The notes beneath the pieces were generated by a model. The model saw nothing but the letters and a program-made list of their open reading frames with translations. It was not told the DNA's origin and ran no database searches. Below, piece by piece: positions 7,372 to 50,236 of a stretch of 64,000 nucleotides of DNA. The position numbers were made by a program, and so were the translations under genes. The number at the start of each line of letters is the position of its first letter. Position 1 is the stretch's first letter. The stretch comes from Monocercomonoides exilis PA203 (taxonomy: Eukaryota; Protista; Preaxostyla): NCBI GenBank assembly GCA_001643675.2, contig LSRY02000017.1:372001-436000 (forward strand). Reading direction: 5' to 3'.

Positions 7372-9938
7372 ATGAGAATTATCAAGACTTTATCGTTTTG
7401 TGTAATAATCACAATGTTGGTCAAATTATTGACTTTTTCAAAAAGATCCAATTATGTTCCGATATTGTTCTATTTTTTTACAAAATCAGTTTCAGGCTTA
7501 TTCGTGTGAACTTCTAAGTTTTCATAAAATATTTATTTTTTACATGTTCTTTAAAGGCATATATCTTATTAATTGCATTTGTTGCTGTAATTTCTTATTG
7601 TTGCTTGAAAAAAATTTTTAGCGATATAAATATGCGAATTGCTGTGATTAATGCTTTCGTTTTAATAAGAAATTATTACATAAGATATTATATATTTTTG
7701 GATGAAACATTTGGAGATGCTTCAAGAAATAATTTAACAACTCTTTGTTGCATGCCTTTGCTTTTACTTGCATTTACTGTACATGAACGGATAAAAAGTC
7801 TTGGAATTCAACAAAACATTACGAAATTCTTGCTTTTCAAGCATATTTGCTCATTAATTATTTGCATTGTCGAAATCATTTCCTTGCTTTCAGATTTTTC
7901 GCTTAGAAAATGGGTTTATTTTACGGATTTCATCAGACTTGATTTTATTCAGAAAGATCAAATAAGCAAAAGACAATTTTTGTTAAATTGGGATTATAAC
8001 ATTTATTTAGTTTCATGCGTATATTCATTTCTATATTTTGGATTTGATGTTGAAATTGCAACGGTTCTTAATATGTGCCTCAAGGATCTATATATTCTTG
8101 TACGTATCATTTTTACACAAGCACTTTCTCCTCAAATGATGCATAAAAAAGCAATCACAAACACGCATTGTACGCTTCACGGAAATATTAAACAAATGAT
8201 TTGTAACAATTTTACAAAATTATTAACCTTCTGTTTCTTGAAACTTCGGAATTTTATGAGTTTCATTGTCTATTGGTTAACTAACTTTCTTGATGATCCG
8301 TGCCATGAAAAGCTTTACAATAGCATTATTCCATTATTAACTAATGTCATTATTTTGCTCAATGGATATATACCATATAAAGGATGGGGCCAACAAGATA
8401 ATCCTGCAGTTATTGAATCGATTACATCTGCTGAACCATTTGTGTCATCTTCAGCAACCATCCACAACTCTGTTAACCGATTAGGTTCCCGCCAGCTTCC
8501 ACAGCCTACATTGTACACTGGGCTACCAATTATTTTTGCTTTAATCGGAGACAATGAGTATCAAGAGTTATTGAGCAGTCCAGAGGTCTTTGCCTTTTTG
8601 TGCTTGATGGTTGAGTATCTCGGGCTATTTTTGCTGTGGTTTACGAAATCTGCACGCGATTTGCTGGCGTTGAGAAAAACATTGACCAGCATCCAGCAAT
8701 TGCGTAAAAGTGGGCTCAAACCTCCAACACAACAAGAGTTTGCAGAGTTGAATGACAAGACTTGTGCGATTTGCAGACTGGAAATGGAGATGGAGAGGGA
8801 GGAAGAAGAGGGAAATGAACAGGAAATAGAAGAACAAGTTGAAAAGGAGGATGTAACATATTTAAAAGAAGAAGAAACAAAACAAGAAAATATCTCAACC
8901 AGTGCTTTCGATGCTGAAAATGAAGAATTCACAATAAATTCTGAAGAAAATGGCGAATCTTCCATTTTTGTTCCGAACATTATTTCGAGCAGTGCCAAAA
9001 TGAATGTTGACGATTATTCTTCAGAACAGAATGAAGAGCAATGCCCTGTTGAAAAAGAAAAATATGACAGAAAAGATGACAATTCAACTTTATCTGATGA
9101 AAGAATGAGCGGACAATCAAACAAAAATGAGAGTAATCACGATGATGTTATGGATAATGATAATGATGATGGAGATGCAGTTATGAGGAAAATTCAACGA
9201 TCAGACAGTTCTTTGAATGAAAAAGAAAATGAAAAGGAAATGAAAAGAGACGATAAAAGTGAAGATGGTTGCATGAATATTGAGGAAAAAGAAGAGAAAA
9301 AACATGCACTCAAAGAATCATTTGTTCGTCGCTTATGGAATAAAATCCGAAAAGCCCCTTCTTCTTCTCCTCTTCCTTCTGCTTCATCGCCATCGTCTTC
9401 ATCATCATCATCATCTTCTTCTTCTTCTTCTTCTTCTTCTTTGGTATCTCCTCCCTTGTCCTCTTCATCTGCCCGTCCTCTTCCCCAAGAAACGCCCGAA
9501 GAATATGCTTTCCGTCAGACGCTGCGGCGTGCTCCGTGTGGTCACGTCTTCCACAATTCGTGTCTGCATGACTGGATAGTGCAGTTTGACACGTGCCCAA
9601 CCTGCCGTGCTTTGCTGTCTGCGGAAGAAGATAAAAAAATCGAAAAGAAGACGCGGAGGCAGAAGCAGAAGGAGCGCCGTATGCAAAAGAAAAAAGAGCA
9701 AAAAGAAAAAATTGAGAGGGAGCGAATGATGATGGAGAGTGAAATAATTGAAAGAAGCAGAATGTTGCTGAGGGATAACTCGGGAATGCTTGCAAACAGC
9801 GAAAAGATGCAAATTCTGTTGTATAATCACAAATTGATGCTGACTGTGCACTCGTGCAATAAAAAGTTGACTTCTTATCTTTTAAAAACTCCAATCGCTT
9901 CAATTCCTTCACTTCATTTTCAACCAACACTTACAAAG

Positions 9939-10015
<77 letters not shown>

Positions 10016-10373
10016 ACCATCTTCTTCTTCCTCCTCTTCCTCCTCTTCTTCTTCTTCTTCTTCTTCTTCAAATCCTTTATTGAATCCTTCTTCCTCCTCT
10101 TCATCCTCCTCATCTTCATCCTCATCCTCATTTCCCATGTCACATTCTTCTTCAATAGAATCTTCAAACATCGCAAATAACACTTCAGTGCAGAATTCAC
10201 CACTGAGCGACTCTGAAAAGAAATCTTCTCCAATTTGGCAAACAATTGCAGATGGTGTTGAAAACTTACCCAATTCATATGTTGAAAACCTGCAACCTGA
10301 AGATTTTATGTTTGTGGCGTCTGTGCTTGTGGAAGAGATTAATTTGCTACGAACGAAAAAGATAAATTCTTGA
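7372..10373 (+). CDS. Multi-pass membrane RING-H2 E3 ubiquitin ligase (HRD1/gp78-like); exon 1 7372-7503, exon 2 7557-10373
   Basis: Hydrophobic N-terminal half, then PTQQEF...DKTCAICR and PCGHVFHNSCLHDW...TCPTCR (RING-H2 ligands). An in-phase GT-AG intron at 7504-7556 links ATG 7372 to the 922-aa ORF. Confidence 0.8.
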
Positions 10374-21667: not shown

Positions 21668-23347
21668 TCAGACCCATGGCTTCCCAAACATAAGCTTTAT
21701 GCTGCTATCAACAATTTCTGTTGACTCTCGTGGAGCTGATTTTGATCGCCTAAGCTGTTTTTCCAGCCGGGCAAGGTACAAGCTGTGTGCCGTTTTTGGT
21801 GTTTTCATCGGAGACTGTGTTGCATCATTCACTGAGAGATTGCTCGCACCATCTTCACTTCCTGATCCCATTGCGGATCTGACTGGGGTTGAGACAAGAG
21901 AGCCTGCAATGTCAATGTGCTGTATGGAGTTAAACAGAGGATTAGAAGGAGACTCTGCAGACGACGAAGTTGATGGCAAAGCAGATAAAGATGCTTCTCC
22001 ACAAGAAGTTGAGGAAGTGGGTGTAGATATCGGATGGTCGAAGGAGGGTGCAGAAAACTGCTTTGCTGGAGTTTGAGTTGAAGAAGAAGGCAATGAAGTG
22101 TGAAGAGGTAGGTTTGGTGTGGTGGATGATCCAGTACGATAACTCACACTTGGCTGTGGAACAGTTTTGAAAGGGCCTGAGATTGCTTGGCTACGAAATG
22201 CATATGGACGTGTAAGTGAGCGCGCTTCTGTTGATAATGGCAGAGTTAGCAGAGAAGACGAATAAGATGATTTCGGGAATGAAATGGGTGTGGTGGAGGT
22301 GGTAGCATGAATGAACGGTGATGTGCCAAAGCGAGCTGTGGAGTCCAAATAAGAAGAATTATGAAACAATGATGGACGAAACATCGGAGATTGAAGATAA
22401 GGTGATCGGGGTTGAAATGCAGTTGAGAATCTTGTAAAGGCGAATGAGGAAGGGCTCTTTTGAGACTTCTCCATCAGTCTATTCATGGTCAGAGAAGACT
22501 GAAGCAGAGAAGATGTCTTTAGTGATGTGGCGAGGGGCCCTGATATGGATGTAGATATTTGAGGTGTGGGATAAACAGCTTCCAACTGTTCAAGAATTGG
22601 AGGAGGAGTTCGGCATCTTCGTCCTTTAGGATCGGGTGGGAAAAATGCCGGACAACCCAAATGATGTTGTAGTGTTGGAGTTGTACTAAGACGAGGAGAA
22701 AATAAGGGCGCGTATTGCGATGGAAAGGCAAGAGTCGTTCGGTGTTGAACTGGACTTTTCGTTGAAAGATGTAGAGAAGAAGAATTGTTCAGGGGAGGTT
22801 CCTTTTCAAAAATGGAAATTTGCTGCTCATTTAAAAGCGCAGGGAATTGCATAGGAGCTTTTTCCTTAAATTCCTGACTATACCCAATCAATTTTTGAAG
22901 TTTATCAGATATTGGACTGTTTGATAATTTATTTCTTTGAACAAGAGAATCCACGCAATTGATAAACTGTTGTTTCAATATTTGAAGATTATTCCCGCAA
23001 GTCTTTTAAACATTTTTTCAACAAAAATTCAATTCAAAAATATATCAAGCTGAAAAATAACTAACTATTAAACTGGAAAATGAGGATTCTTGCTCTGTAA
23101 GAAACTTGTCGATTTCCAGTAGCTGTTTATGCATGCGCGTAAAAGTCTGTGCTGTTAAACGAAAAGAGGCTATTCTGTCGGAATCTTTAATCAAAGCAGA
23201 AAATTCGTTTAATCAATTTAAATGAAAAATCTAACCATTTCGGAAAGTCATCATTTCAGTTATATGTTTGAGTGCCTGGCGTGTATCATTTATAAATGCT
23301 TCTTTAAGTTTTAGAATTCTTTCTGCTCTTTCAGCCAAGGTATTCAT
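21668..23347 (-). CDS. Hypothetical protein: short N-terminal coiled-coil followed by a long S/P/T-rich disordered tail (3 exons)
   Basis: ORFs 23231-23461 and 21668-22978 are linked through a small exon (~23062-23186) by GT-AG introns. The start could alternatively be 23461. Confidence 0.55.
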
Positions 23348-23489
23348 CAGCAAACAACTTGACCTGGTGAACTGCAATATATGGGTCACGATCAATCGCT
23401 TCTTTCCAAACGAAACACTTTTTTCTATAGTCGGATATTGTAGTAAAAAATGTATGCCCATGTTATAATTTTTGTGTGCTTAACAGAAA

Positions 23490-24093
23490 ATGATATATTT
23501 GTGTCAATATTCTTCCAGGGAGTCAACAACTGCGAATGTTATGTGTCAATTCTTTCGTGTAAATAGAAATCGGTCAACCGATTTAGTTTATTTGACTTGT
23601 CCGAAGGAGGTGCTCGGTTGGTGTTTTTGATGTATTCTTGCGGCGTCACGGGTTCAAGAAGCTTCCGATGACCGCTTCTGTTCCCGTTTTTTTCCAGGAG
23701 GAAGCAACGAAGCAGACGGAGGCTCATTTGGTGATTGGAATGGAAACAAGAAATGATGAAAACGTTCTCACCTCCCGCTGGACGGCTTCTGCCGTTGAAG
23801 TGGAAGAAGACGATGATTCTCATCTTGAACTTGTTTTGCATTCTTTTCTTCAAATGCAAGGTAAGTCTACAATGTTACTACTCATGGAACTTGGGCAATA
23901 TTTAGAATGCACCAAGGCTATGGTCATCGTCCCGGATCTGAAATCAGAGCATAAGGCGGACAAGTTTGCGGCAGTTCTTGCCAGCCATGGATTTCAACGG
24001 GCAAAAGATGCTGAAAAAACTCCAACTACGTTATATATGCTTTATAACTACCCACTTGCGACTTCTTCAGCTTTATCTACTGCATCATCATAA
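23490..24093 (+). CDS. OAZ: Ornithine decarboxylase antizyme, expressed by +1 programmed ribosomal frameshift (ORF1 23490-23630, ORF2 23629-24093; ~200 aa fusion)
   Basis: ORF1 (46 aa) ends GGT TGG TGT TTT TGA (G-W-C-F-stop). The +1 frame continues DVFLRRHG... into the antizyme domain: GKSTMLLLMELGQYLECTKAMVIV...KFAAVLASHGF...LYMLY. Confidence 0.85.
23619..23631 (+). other. +1 ribosomal frameshift site TGG-TGT-TTT-TGA-T
   Basis: Matches the antizyme shift-site context (vertebrate TGG TGC TCC TGA T; a UUU-UGA variant is known from nematodes). Confidence 0.85.
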
Positions 24094-24615
24094 TATACTT
24101 TAACTTAAAGCCTTCCATTTTTTTTTTTCATTCACTTTTATTTTTTTATGAAGCTTGTATACCACTTTTTTTCTGTATATTTTTATTGGTTGTCAAAAGT
24201 TTTTGCTTTTGCTTTTGCTTTTGTTTTAATTTTTTACAGAAATTCTTTATTCTTTCTTTTTCTATTGATTTTTTTTTATTGATAATTATATAAAAATGGC
24301 TTTTTTTATTAGAAGTTGAAATGACTGCGCATTCCAATTAAAATGATTTAAAAATAATTCACATTCAAATGTTGAATTTTTTTTTAAAAGTTTTTAATTT
24401 TGAAAGGAAATTTTTATTGCAAAAAAGGATCAAAATATTAAGAAAAATGAGTCATTGAAAAATGCAAACATTAGAAGTGACGAAGTGAAAATCAAATAGA
24501 TAGATATATAATATATTATCATAAATGAAGTGATGGAACCTCTTTCGAAATTGATACTTTATTAAAACAGAGAAAAGTTACGGTAGTTCGAAAACTTTTG
24601 CAAGTTATGATTTAT

Positions 24616-25790: not shown

Positions 25791-27308
25791 ATGACAGATA
25801 TTCAAATTCGTGTTAAAACGCTTGGGGGAGAAACAATGTATATTATTGTTAACCAAGAAATGACTATTAAGCAGCTTAAAGAAATTATCGAAGAGAAAAT
25901 GAATATTCCCATCCCTGAGCAAAGACTTATTTTTGGAGGTCGAATTCCAAAGGATGAATTAACCATAAAAGAAGCAGGCATGTACTTTTGTAAATGCTAT
26001 AATTTATTTTGTACTGATTTTTTATTTCAGATATTATTGAAGATTCTTGTGTAACTATTTTAAGATCTACAGCATCACCAAAAATTAAATCATCAGAGAA
26101 AACTGAAAGAAAAGAAGAAAGTTCGAGTCTTGATGATGAAAGTCAAGATGGTACTTCTCAATCTGACCAGAATCTTTCGGAAGCTGCACTTAATCAATAC
26201 AAAGGAATAGTTATTCCTGAGAAATATTTTGAATCGCAAAATTCGTTCAATGGTACATATTTTTACATATTAATTCGTTTTTATTTTGTTCTCAGATTTT
26301 CTTGCTTCGGATTCTTTTCAGAGTATTCTTGATACTCCTTTTATGCAGCAACTATTAGATAACGAAGAAGCTTTAGGAACAATGTTCGCTTCAAACCCTG
26401 GATTTAAACAACTTCTGGAATCTGATCCTGAAATGAGCGCAATTTTCAGAAATCCAGAAGTGATGAGACAAATGTCACAGATTATGAAAAACCCTGCCCT
26501 ATTTAAAGAAATGATCAGGCATTCAGACGCAGTTCAAAGACAATTGGAGACAACCCCAGGAGGATTCCATTATCTCGAGCAAATGTATCACGATCTACAA
26601 GAACCTGTTTTTGATTCTTTGGAGAAGCAGCAGCAATCTCTTTTTGGTGGTTTTAATTCTGAAAAGAAAGAAGACGAAGAGGAGTATGAAAGAAAACGAC
26701 AAGAAAGAATCAAGGAAAGTGAAAAAGGAGTTCCACTTGTGAATCCTTGGGGAAGCAGAAACAAAGGGAAGACAACGAGCATGGGAGGCATGGATGGTTA
26801 TTCATATCCAGACCAAGCCGCTGGGGCAGCAAAACCATATGCTTACAATCCATTTATGGGCGGATGGCCTATGATGCCATTTGCACAGCAGCCGTCTGGC
26901 AGCTCAGGCGCTGCGCCTGGGATGCAGACAGGAGCACCGTTTGGAGCACCGTTTGGAGCACCATTTGGAGCACAGTCTTTCACTTCACAGCCTGCGATGC
27001 CCTCAGCTTTTCAAGCCACTCCTTCACATGGCGGTTCTGCCCCAGCCCAGAAAGCTCCTTCTGCGCCAACACAGCCAGTTCCATCAAGTGCTCCAACTGC
27101 TCTTCCTATGATGCTCCCAACAATGAAAAATCTTACTGATGCTGAGCTAGGTGCTCTCAAGACAAAGTATGCCAAAGAGCTGGAGACTCTTCATATGCTT
27201 GGATTTGTGGACGACAGGCTTAACGTGCAAATTCTTGATGCTTCAAATGGAAGCATTTCGATTACAGTGGAAAAATTGTACTTGCTTAGTGGAGGAATGG
27301 GAATTTAA
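25791..27308 (+). CDS. Ubiquilin/Dsk2-like protein (UBL-STI1-UBA)
   Basis: N-terminal UBL (IQIRVKTLGG..TIKQLKEII..IPIPEQRLIFGG), STI1 repeats (NPEVMRQ..KNPALFKEM), LETTPGG and NPW motifs, C-terminal UBA (YAKELETLHMLGF..N..L..SNGSI..VEKL). Confidence 0.88.
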
Positions 27309-46301: not shown

Positions 46302-48826
46302 ATGTCTTTTTTGAAACCTCAATCAACTCTTAATTCTAGATCGAAAATTCTTTGGAAAGAAATTGAACGCATCGGTGGAGATGATATTGATTCATTGCTT
46401 GTCTATCTATTTTACAACTACAGGCAATCATCTTCAGTAATTAACGATTTGTTGAAGTCAATAAACGGTTTGATTATTTTTTAGTTAAGTTTTATATTGT
46501 AAAATTTATGGACTGTCATTGTTGTCATTTTCTTATTTATTTGCTAATTATTTTTATTTATAAACAGAATATCATATAAAGCTGCTGGAAGACCTGTCTG
46601 TGGTGTACAACAACGCTCCGTTGCACACTCAGACAACAATGCTGCAAGCGCTTTCCCGCAACACATCATTGTCCGATTTACTGGACTACGGATATGATGT
46701 CACAGAGGGAAAATTTATTTACGCGAAGCAAACACTGAAGAAAAACCAAGGATTTATTATTCCGCCTCAAAAACCTCATCTTCCGTCTTGCAAAAGTGGT
46801 TTGTATTTATTTAAATTATTTTAAATAATGTTCTCTTTTTTCCTAAGGCTTAAATGAACAGGATTGGGAAAAGGGCAACAACTGGATGTTGGCCCATTCA
46901 ACTGAAGCTTCAACTTCGCTTCAGTCAGCAAAAAAAAAGCAGCGAGCTGAGCCAGATTACTCAAGATTTATTGACGAAGCAGCGTGGGATGAAGAAATAA
47001 TTACGGAAAATTCTTCTTCAAATAAAAAACAATCTTCTTCTTCTTCAACATCATCTCAACAAAATAAAAAATCGAATCCCATTTCAGAAAATAATTCTCC
47101 ATCTTCAAATTCAACTTCTTCTCAAGCTGTTGATGCTCCAATCAGTACTCCAATTAGGAGAGAAAGGGGTTCAACAAAAATAAAAACAAATAAATCACAG
47201 CATAAACGTCATTCATCTCCTTCACCAATTCCAATTCACAAACTTTTCAAAACAAAAAAATCAACATATTCCTCTTCTTCCTCTTCTTCCTCTTCTTCCT
47301 CTTCTTCCTCTTCTTCCTCTTCTTCCTCTTCTTCCTCTTCTTCCTCTTCTTCCTCATCCTCCTCATCCTCCTCATCCCCCTCATCCCCCTCATCCTCCTC
47401 ATCCTCCTCATCTTCCAAAAAGCAACAAGAAGAATCAAAAAATTCTTCTCACATCGAAAAATCTTCAACATCCTTTCGCAACGATGATGTGTGGGTGAGT
47501 GATCAATTAGTCGAATATGCCACTTCACCCACTCTTATTCCTCCTCAAGCATTCCAAAATCTTCTTTCGTTATTTTCAAAAGAAATCAACACTTCATCTT
47601 CTCAACATAATACACAAACAGATGATAGTGATTTATCGCTTTGTGATAATTTTGCACAAACCATGTCAAACAGCAATGCAATGGATGTTCTTCCTGCAAT
47701 TCAATCTCCTTTCATCTCTCTGTCTTCTTCTCATTCTTATGATTCTTCAAAAACATTATCAAAACTGTCAAAAGGATTACCGAATTTGGGAAACACCTGC
47801 TATTTTGCTTCTCTTCTTCAATGCTTCTCTTCTGTAATGTCACAAAAACCATCTTTATTCAAAAAACGATCAACAACAAAGAGCATATCTTCTCGTGTTT
47901 TAAGTGTATGCAATCAACTATCCAAAGATGGAAATGAAATTCGTTCGTGGGTCCCATCGCTTATTAATAAATGGGAAAAATATTGCAACTATGGCTGCAG
48001 GCAGCAACAGAATGTGATAGAAGCATTTGAAAATCTTCATCAACTTCTTCAAATTAATAAGATATTAGAAAAGGATACCTTCAATCCTGTGCTCATTACT
48101 CATTTCAAATGTCAAAAATGTCAAAAAGTTTCTAATCATTTCAATGAAGCCTGCAGTAATGTTATCATTAATTCATCATCTCCTCATAAAGGTCTATCTT
48201 CTATCTTTTCAACTGAGATATTGAACGGAAAAAATGCTGTCTATTGCAACGATTGCAAAGAGAAATGCTGTGCTGCGAGATGGGAGGAAATGGCTGCATT
48301 TCCAGACGTGCTGGCCCTCTGTCACGAATGCACTGATTCTGCTAGCTCTGCTCCTTCGCGAACTCTTCTGATTGAAACAGATCGTGTTTACAAGCGAACA
48401 TTTATCAAAGGGTTTTTAACAGAAAGTATTCAACATCTCCAAAAGAACAATAATGAAATCATCATATATCATCTTGTTGGGCAAATTCTTTTTCAGCGTC
48501 TGGATCAACAAAATGGGCATTACATTGCAGTTGTGAAAAGGAAGGCAGGAAGAGAGGCACTGTGGAATATTTGCAACGATTCTGATGTACTTGAATTGGA
48601 CAAAGAAAACTGGACAAAGGAATGGAAGGATCTTTATGCTCAAGGTTTCACTCCTTCGCTCTCATTCTATATCAAAGAAAAAACCAAACCAACTTTTTCA
48701 TCAATTCAATTTGGTGGTTCTTTTTCTTCTTCTTCAGAAACATTAGATTTAAACTATTTAAATAACACATCATCATCAACAACAACAACATCGTCGTCTT
48801 CGTCATCATCATCATCATCATCATCA

Positions 48827-48862
<36 letters not shown>

Positions 48863-50236
48863 TCGTCTCCATTCATCACTCCACCTCATCGTTCAACTTT
48901 CATTCCTCCACTTTCTTCGTCAATTTCAACAAGATATGGATTGGAAGCTTTGAAAGATAAAAGAAAGAAAACGGGCATCTTTTCTCCCAATGAAAAGAGA
49001 TTAATCTTCAAGCCCAAGACGAAATTATGGAGTGAGTTCACAGAAGAAACAAACATCAAAGTTTCTCTGTCACATTTCTACAAACTCACTACTAACTTCT
49101 CGAAAGCGAAAAGGCGCACAGATCTCTGTGGCATGTGTGAGAAACTCAACTATCTGGAAAACAAATTAAAGTCATCTCAAAACAAAAATGGACTTTCTTC
49201 TGCTGAGTTTCATACACTAAAATTACTTCGTCAACATCGACTTGTTGCAGAAATGCAACGAAAACATTATCAATCAACTGTCGACAATCTGAAAGAGGGA
49301 GAAGCAGTCTTCGTCTTCGACTTCAAAGAGAAATGGAAACTCCCTATCGGAAAGAACCAACTTCAACAGGAATTCTTTAATTACCAACAAGTCTCTCAAT
49401 TCACAATCATTTCTCTTCAAAAAATAAATAATCAACAAATTAAAAGAACTTTCAACTTCTTCTCCGACTGCCTTTCAAATGATCACAGATTTGTTATTGA
49501 GTGTCTGGAATCTGTGATCAAAAGACACTTCTTCTCAGACACTCATACTTTTAAGTTCTTCTGCGATTCTGGTCCACACAACCGAAATCGCTTCCTTCTT
49601 CACTTCATCCTATCCAAACAATCAAAACTTTTGAAAAAGAAAAACACTCAACTCAACTTCTTCGCTGAGCACCATGGAAAAAATATTTGCGATAGTGAAT
49701 TTGGTGCACTTGTGAACACAATCAACAACAACATATCAACTGAACACATCACCACACTTCATGACTTAATCAACTTCTTCGACAACAATATGAATGTTTC
49801 AACATCTGCTTCTTCGACATCACAACAAGACATTTTTGAATCATCCTCAACCAATTCTTCTCCATCAACATCAACTGTCAATAACTCTGTGCATGAGAGG
49901 TACTTTGAAGAGTATGTACCATCTCAGCAAATTTCATGGCCATCTCTGTCAGTCCCTCACATGAAGGACTACTTGTATTTTGAGCGCAAGGGCTCATTTG
50001 TCTGTGCTTCAGCTGTTGGATATCTTCCTCAACGCTCTCTGGTTGCCCTCGAATCTTCGACAATTAAAGAAAAAGTGCAACGTTCAAGAAAGACCTTCAA
50101 CTCTGGTAACACATCATCTAACTCTTCTCTTCTTTCTCAATCTTCTCAAGATCTTCTTTCAAGGAGATTTGAGCTTCTTCTTGACTCTTCTTCTTTTAAT
50201 GAATCTCAAAATTGTATTAATGGTGTTCCCTATTAA
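46302..50236 (+). CDS. Sola2-like DDD transposase with an inserted ubiquitin-specific protease (C19/USP) domain; 3 exons (46302-46467, 46568-46798, 46848-50236), 1,261 aa
   Basis: USP Cys box GLPNLGNTCYFASLLQC, QQNVIE, two CxxC fingers, His box GHYIAVVK..WNICNDSDV. Transposase features: TDLCGMCE, H..AEMQR, VFDFKE, QQEFF, FCDSGPHNRN, FFAEHHGKNICDSEFG. Both introns splice in phase. Confidence 0.85.

Follow-up and report, generated by a model that had tools for sequence, protein, structure and literature searches.

Can a short open reading frame (ORF) of the oxymonad Monocercomonoides exilis, which stops at TGG TGT TTT TGA, be the beginning of an antizyme gene whose product is completed by a programmed +1 frameshift into the ORF that follows? 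The locus lies on the forward strand of a 64,000-nucleotide stretch of the genome (contig LSRY02000017.1, positions 372,001 to 436,000), henceforth the window, to which all coordinates refer unless another contig is named. An earlier note, made from the letters of the window, had read it in this way. Among cases of cellular recoding, antizyme frameshifting is the textbook example. Taking together the transcript, the related genes, the predicted fold and the polyamine metabolism of the organism, we conclude that the locus is most probably an expressed two-exon gene for a very divergent antizyme homolog that is made by programmed +1 frameshifting.

Transcript structure and a start codon split by an intron

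Contigs from public sequencing runs were aligned to positions 23300-24300 of the window, with 24194-24300 skipped as repeats. RNA contigs from two runs of a 2024 metatranscriptome study cover 23519-24193 colinearly, with 0 differences and 0 gaps, and a further contig, from a 2016 run whose type is not recorded (it is listed as “DNA?”), agrees with the window over 23524-24193. In both RNA runs (X4 and X6), contigs join position 23451 to 23519, removing a 67-nt GT..AG intron (23452-23518) that lies inside the start codon. Hence, the first exon, in the extent supported by the run X4 contig that begins at 23411, consists of a 5' untranslated region (UTR) and the AT of the start codon (23411-23451). 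The codon itself is made up of A23450 and T23451 joined to G23519, and 23411-23449 contains no further ATG. The remainder of ORF1 (23519-23630), supported by the RNA contigs and by frame-specific codon differences, comprises the G of the ATG, 36 sense codons, and UGA, giving 37 codons in total (M-ESTTANV...LGWCF). The earlier note had held that no intron was needed and had placed the start at the ATG at 23490; this is wrong at the 5' end, as that ATG and the residues MIYLCQYSSR are intronic and ORF1 has 37 codons rather than 46.

The 3' part of the earlier reading is borne out by the sequence and the RNA. ORF1 ends, as described, at TGG TGT TTT TGA (23619-23630) within a recoding site that extends through the following T (23619-23631), with UUU at 23625-23627 as the predicted P-site codon and UGA at 23628-23630 as the stop. 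Skipping T23628 gives GAT GTA TTC TTG CGG... and leads into ORF2 (23629-24093), a +1-frame ORF of 154 codons that ends with the TAA at 24091-24093 and is supported by its open frame and by codon differences. No splice crosses 23600-23640, the UGA stop and its T5 run being present in the RNA contigs of both libraries. A further candidate intron, at the GTAAGT at 23860 within ORF2, was ruled out, as the RNA contigs are colinear there. The contigs end at 24193, which delimits a 3' UTR (24094-24193) in its contig-supported extent; they are uninformative on transcript ends, expression level, and protein, and the support for expression consists of presence in RNA libraries together with the splice. 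The predicted trans-frame product has 37 + 154 = 191 residues, with an antizyme/GNAT-like alpha-beta domain predicted at 23677-24060 (ORF2 residues about 17-144).

The AT|GT...AG|G layout of the start-codon intron is readable in the M. exilis paralog (L004) and in the related genes L005, L006, L008, L009, and L011 described below, which make up most of the family; their ORF1 after splicing starts with M followed by E, D, Q, A, or S. One relative, L014, has an intact ATG GAG and appears to be a copy that is intronless or has been spliced. Both M. exilis copies possess an ATG within the start-codon intron in frame with ORF1 (23490 in the window; 2078-2080 on the minus strand in L004), so that intron retention would still yield ORF1 with another N-terminus, MIYLCQYSSRE... 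in the window and MRIISRE... in the paralog.

A few other features of the locus and its surroundings were observed. Just past the 3' UTR, within 24194-24300, long T-runs accompany a GCTTTT microsatellite at about 24204-24225. A contig from run X9 (depth 3.4, labelled as another organism) matches 23684-24065 without substitutions and lacks one base at 24014, possibly through an error or because it comes from another, closely related strain whose copy is broken. Long ORFs elsewhere in the window, at 7605-10373, 26286-27308, and 46886-50236, encode a RING finger, a ubiquilin-like domain, and a UCH deubiquitinase; the presence of these ubiquitin-system domains in the neighborhood is probably a coincidence.

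A family of genes with a conserved shift site

Homology searches with ORF2 recovered one small family and no other matches. Its members include a paralog on M. exilis contig 67 with TGG TGC TTT TGA and ORF2 in the +1 frame. From its internal Met onwards, ORF2 of the paralog is identical to MONOS_3452 of M. exilis, an “uncharacterized protein,” which confirms the metamonad host (an oxymonad; Metamonada, Preaxostyla) that the earlier note had suspected. The suspicion that gene callers would misannotate such genes was also justified: the public models begin at the internal ORF2 Met and are named “uncharacterized protein.” The combination of TGG TG(T/C) TTT TGA with a conserved ORF2 in +1 is found in 9 of the 11 distinct family genes, namely, the window gene, the paralog, L006/7, L008, L010, L011, L012/13, and L015 from metagenome contigs, and L014 from a Logan assembly of a public run; some of the shift-requiring relatives are oxymonad-like sequences from gut metagenomes. 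With the stop kept in RNA and ORF2 in +1, this shared layout upholds the claim that a +1 shift at UUU-UGA is needed. Two proteins, P0008 and P0009, that had the appearance of in-frame fusions were rejected as such, because their DNA shows ORF2-frame ORFs that are open upstream by chance, with UUU-UGA at both loci.

The 12-mer at the site is expected 0.16 times per window by chance and by itself proves nothing; it is the comparative evidence that puts the finding above chance. This evidence comes from codon differences counted among seven family genes. Over the 84 nt that precede the site, 213 synonymous and 188 non-synonymous differences were counted in the ORF1 frame; the corresponding figures for the two remaining frames are 48/375 and 19/403. 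In the 84 nt downstream, it is the ORF2 frame that shows this pattern, with 212 synonymous and 238 non-synonymous differences, as against 27/418 and 23/419. Judged by these substitution patterns, UUU-UGA is the exact point at which the frame under purifying selection for protein sequence changes. UGG-UG(U/C)-UUU-UGA is without exception among the shift-requiring genes, and the constraint that keeps UGG-UG(U/C) invariant may act on the RNA or on the encoded Trp-Cys residues.

The nearest parallels are the antizymes (PF02100) of the Caenorhabditis elegans clade, Agaricomycetes, and four protozoans, in which UUU-UGA serves as the shift site (Ivanov and Atkins 2007, PMC1874602). Like the M. exilis genes, these have a short ORF1 with a +1 shift before UGA, UGG-UG(C/U) directly 5' of UUU-UGA, and an ORF2 of ~150 codons with an antizyme/GNAT-like domain, and both are missed by gene callers. 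Further, UGG-UGC-UCC-UGA is kept from human to Schizosaccharomyces pombe and has been interpreted as a remnant of the original design (PMC1874602). The match of the M. exilis site to this UGG-UGC-xxx-UGA design points to an antizyme rather than an acetyltransferase. The M. exilis family nevertheless differs from the known UUU-UGA antizymes in several respects: it is far more divergent, such that Pfam sees three members, all below the cut-off; its ORF1 has only 37 codons and a start codon split by an intron; and it has neither a detected 3' pseudoknot or stem-loop nor an ODC (ornithine decarboxylase) in the genome.

Stimulatory elements and the ORF1 peptide

The earlier note had proposed folding the region 3' of the site for a stimulatory structure, and folding found none. 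The window sequence 3' of the site has a folding z-score of -0.67 versus shuffles, and the consensus fold of 8 sequences, at -0.57 kcal/mol with 3 pairs, gives no conserved 3' RNA structure. In L010, an intron lies within ORF2 at about 516-577, 8 codons past the shift site (…YG | FKKLP…), such that any 3' stimulator of that gene would have to extend across an exon junction in the mRNA. On the 5' side, synonymous changes reach right up to TGG TGY, and so outside these six bases no element acting as RNA can be demonstrated. The ORF1 peptide (...CQFFRVN..RSTD..YLTC.KEVL.WCF) is itself conserved as protein and is retained in the in-frame genes too. By analogy with Agaricomycete antizymes, for which a nascent-peptide stimulator has been shown (PMC4505036), it might act as a nascent-peptide stimulator; equally, it might have a role in the mature protein.

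Family members with ORF1 and ORF2 in a single frame

Two family genes are in frame at the site, with TGG TG(T/C) TTT GAT in place of the stop, and read ...WCF-DVFL..., which is the junction predicted for the frameshift product. One of these, L005 (630-641), comes from a Logan contig (run SRR13490892), with the in-frame protein found on 2 contigs; the other, L009 (3292-3303), belongs to Blattamonas nauphoetae (JARBJD010000164.1). In both, one T of the run is absent, which places ORF1 and ORF2 in a single frame. In a maximum-likelihood tree, L005 falls in a clade (support 97/97) together with L006 and L008, both of which require the shift, and the Blattamonas gene sits on a separate long branch. 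As the two are not sisters in the tree, their in-frame states would be independent losses of one T. The B. nauphoetae assembly is Nanopore based and polished with Pilon, and an assembly error is accordingly possible for its in-frame form. A precedent for both genes is the antizyme of Tetrahymena thermophila, which is expressed without frameshifting (PMC1874602); it differs in having no equivalent of ORF1, whereas L005 and L009 keep ORF1, fused through the loss of one T. If real, these variants offer a ready comparison of regulated and constitutive expression.

Relationship of ORF2 to antizymes and to the GNAT fold

The sequence relationship of ORF2 to known antizymes is at the edge of detection. 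With Pfam scanned over ORF1 and ORF2 separately rather than over the joined product, ORF2 of the window, its paralog, and their closest relatives have no match to the antizyme profile ODC_AZ (PF02100) at E ≤ 10. The sole sub-threshold match of the window's ORF1 and ORF2 was to HyaE and was taken as chance. Likewise, a whole-genome six-frame scan with PF02100 did not pick up the locus; the two loci that it did return (L001 and L002, E 0.3-0.65) have internal stops and were taken as chance. More distant members fare differently: ODC_AZ is the only Pfam match of ORF2 of the Blattamonas gene (E 0.022) and of the related proteins P0007 (0.035) and P0011 (0.17). The three matches are co-linear, lie within profile positions 25-97 of 114, and score 12-15 bits against a cut-off of 24.2; as they come from related proteins, they are not independent. 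None of the 13 sequences scanned has an Acetyltransf_* match at E ≤ 10. Profiles of the family had no match at E ≤ 10 among PDB sequences, and when 1.84 billion representatives were searched exhaustively by profile, family members alone were returned, with no bridge to canonical antizymes; the same was true of a word-indexed search with a wider alignment at E ≤ 10.

The predicted models show both the fold of the antizyme C-terminal domain and the GNAT fold. In a Foldseek search of 350,542 chains, human antizyme (4zgy_B) ranked first and 5bwa_B third for both AlphaFold models, among GNAT-fold chains. ODC_AZ clusters are also among the closest folds in the ESM Atlas, and a language-model feature search of the same resource gave unrelated low-score clusters only. 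GNAT enzymes bind acetyl-CoA through a loop with the motif Q/R-x-x-G-x-G/A. At the corresponding position (beta4-alpha3), most family members have QGKS, and others have QGRS, HGKN, INRS (Blattamonas), or SGQS (L012); the loop Gly is not invariant, and 0 of the 20 invariant columns of the family fall in the loop. Compared with GNAT N-acetyltransferases, including those acting on spermidine/spermine, the family has neither a Pfam acetyltransferase match nor the acetyl-CoA pyrophosphate-loop motif and lacks the N-terminal beta1-alpha1 part, and GNAT genes are not recoded. The earlier identification as an antizyme therefore stands in part: it is favored by the sub-cut-off ODC_AZ matches of three relatives and by the top Foldseek rank, and the profile search that it proposed gave no ODC_AZ match for the window's own ORF2. 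We consider it probable, with moderate confidence, that ORF2 belongs to the antizyme lineage by homology.

Absence of ornithine decarboxylase and of spermidine synthesis

The earlier note had placed the product in a circuit that targets ODC for degradation. The genome does not support this, as domains of ODC/ADC, of bacterial ODC, and of spermidine synthase were all searched for without a match. In six frames, the N-terminal (PF02784) and C-terminal (PF00278) domains of ODC/ADC had no match at E ≤ 10, and bacterial ODC/LDC (PF01276) and spermidine synthase (PF01564) had none at E ≤ 0.001. Eukaryotic SAM decarboxylase (PF01536) likewise had no match, which carries no weight, as the control genomes were uninformative. 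Deoxyhypusine synthase (PF01916), on the other hand, was recovered from contig 12 (1555051-1556123), where its gene has three exons, which indicates that the six-frame method works across introns; its presence also implies that the cell needs spermidine, despite the lack of detected synthesis genes. In agreement with this, no pathway for making spermidine was found in a metabolic analysis of M. exilis, which suggested that it is taken up from bacteria; the organism cannot as yet be cultured free of bacteria, the presumed source of its spermidine (PMC12308965).

There being no ODC in the genome, “targets ODC” does not apply here, and with spermidine synthase lacking as well, the effector arm would instead work on the uptake or export of polyamines, or on some other partner. 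A parallel is provided by filarial nematodes, which are without functional ODC and ODC-made putrescine and keep an antizyme for which a role in polyamine uptake was proposed (cited in Atkins et al. 2016, PMC5009743). M. exilis differs from these in belonging to Metamonada, in having two paralogs, and in that ODC and spermidine synthase domains are both undetected. Hence, by analogy, we propose that the M. exilis antizyme homolog probably controls the uptake of polyamines, and not ODC. Antizymes are also known to control polyamine transport. The assignment made here is accordingly to the antizyme family, and ODC regulation forms no part of it, the ODC target being absent from the genome.

Proposed mechanism and alternative explanations

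In the scheme that best accounts for these findings, ribosomes would start at the AUG made by splicing (AT|G) and translate the conserved 37-codon ORF1. We infer that a fraction of them, which would set the efficiency of frameshifting, slips by +1 when UUU occupies the P site and UGA the A site, the tRNA-Phe re-pairing on the overlapping UUU (23626-23628). Reading would then resume at GAU (23629-23631) into ORF2. The resulting protein would have about 191 residues, of which the C-terminal 130 are predicted to adopt the antizyme/GNAT-like fold. To judge by every antizyme that has been studied, polyamines may stimulate the slip, such that the gene would be both sensor and effector. A comparable event occurs in bacterial prfB (RF2), where autoregulatory +1 slippage at a sense codon followed by UGA (CUU-UGA) also involves re-pairing of the P-site tRNA; however, prfB is prokaryotic, encodes an unrelated protein, and uses a Shine-Dalgarno-like stimulator, with RF2 as the sensor.

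The alternatives part from this scheme at different steps. The +1 shift might be real and the protein a lineage-specific member of the GNAT fold that is not an antizyme by descent and acquired UUU-UGA independently. Such an origin would be in keeping with the want of any above-threshold ODC_AZ match, with a fold that fits GNAT enzymes as well as antizyme, and with there being no ODC to regulate. We regard it as unlikely, given that no member matches an acetyltransferase profile and three match ODC_AZ alone, that the family does not conserve the acetyl-CoA loop motif, and that a handful of antizyme chains twice outranked the far more numerous GNAT chains in Foldseek. It would also need a series of coincidences: a short ORF1, a shift codon before UGA, UGG-UGY upstream of it, and a domain of ~150 residues downstream. 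Distinctly less probable is that no frameshift occurs at all and that ORF1 is a regulatory upstream ORF, with ORF2 translated from the AUG at 23668. Upstream ORF control is common among polyamine genes, and the public annotations (P0001 and P0002, the latter being MONOS_3452) start at precisely this Met. Yet the 13 codons between the stop and this first ORF2 Met encode the same protein in both M. exilis copies, with 7 synonymous changes, and are conserved across the family, and the Met itself is replaced by Leu or Ile in five homologs (L005, L006, L008, L011, and L012), which together make independent initiation of ORF2 unlikely. In several homologs, the first ORF2 Met lies 38 residues in, within the conserved domain, and so independent initiation would truncate it. 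The two natural genes that fuse ORF1 with ORF2, and the change of frame in selection at UUU-UGA, are likewise at odds with separate translation.

Least probable is that the T-run contains an assembly or sequencing indel, or that the locus is a decaying pseudogene, a suspicion that could draw on the long-read assembly suggested by 82 Mb in 101 contigs and on the two relatives that differ by exactly one T. Against it, the contigs of the 2016 and 2024 runs, from two studies, match the window base for base, and the stop is common to nine genes from different organisms or samples. The run is T5 in some copies and T4 in others, since the Cys codon varies, and a single recurrent homopolymer error cannot explain the layout. 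Decay would, moreover, be hard to reconcile with purifying selection on both ORFs and with the coverage of 23519-24193 by two RNA runs.

Implications for oxymonads and for the antizyme family

A divergent antizyme homolog made by +1 frameshifting is a recoding type that is already known; two features of this case stand out, the missing target and the natural in-frame variants. A literature search found no paper linking antizyme frameshifting to Metamonada, and its documented range among protists is thin; a conserved oxymonad antizyme clade extends this recoding circuit to a deep eukaryotic lineage. At a practical level, the finding corrects two M. exilis gene models, one of which is MONOS_3452, that are truncated and designated “uncharacterized.” As ODC and spermidine synthase are lacking, the polyamine-transport activity of antizyme, of which less is understood, would here be isolated from ODC degradation. 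We tentatively suggest, at slightly less than an even chance, that oxymonads keep a polyamine-sensing +1 switch without polyamine synthesis and that the homolog purely governs the import of polyamines from bacterial prey or acts on another partner. There may be practical relevance in the dependence of M. exilis cultures on bacteria (PMC12308965). If the suggestion is true, the in-frame genes of Blattamonas and of the organism that carries L005 would be two independent natural experiments in which the sensor has been switched off, and the presence of the antizyme recoding circuit in Metamonada would move it towards the last eukaryotic common ancestor.
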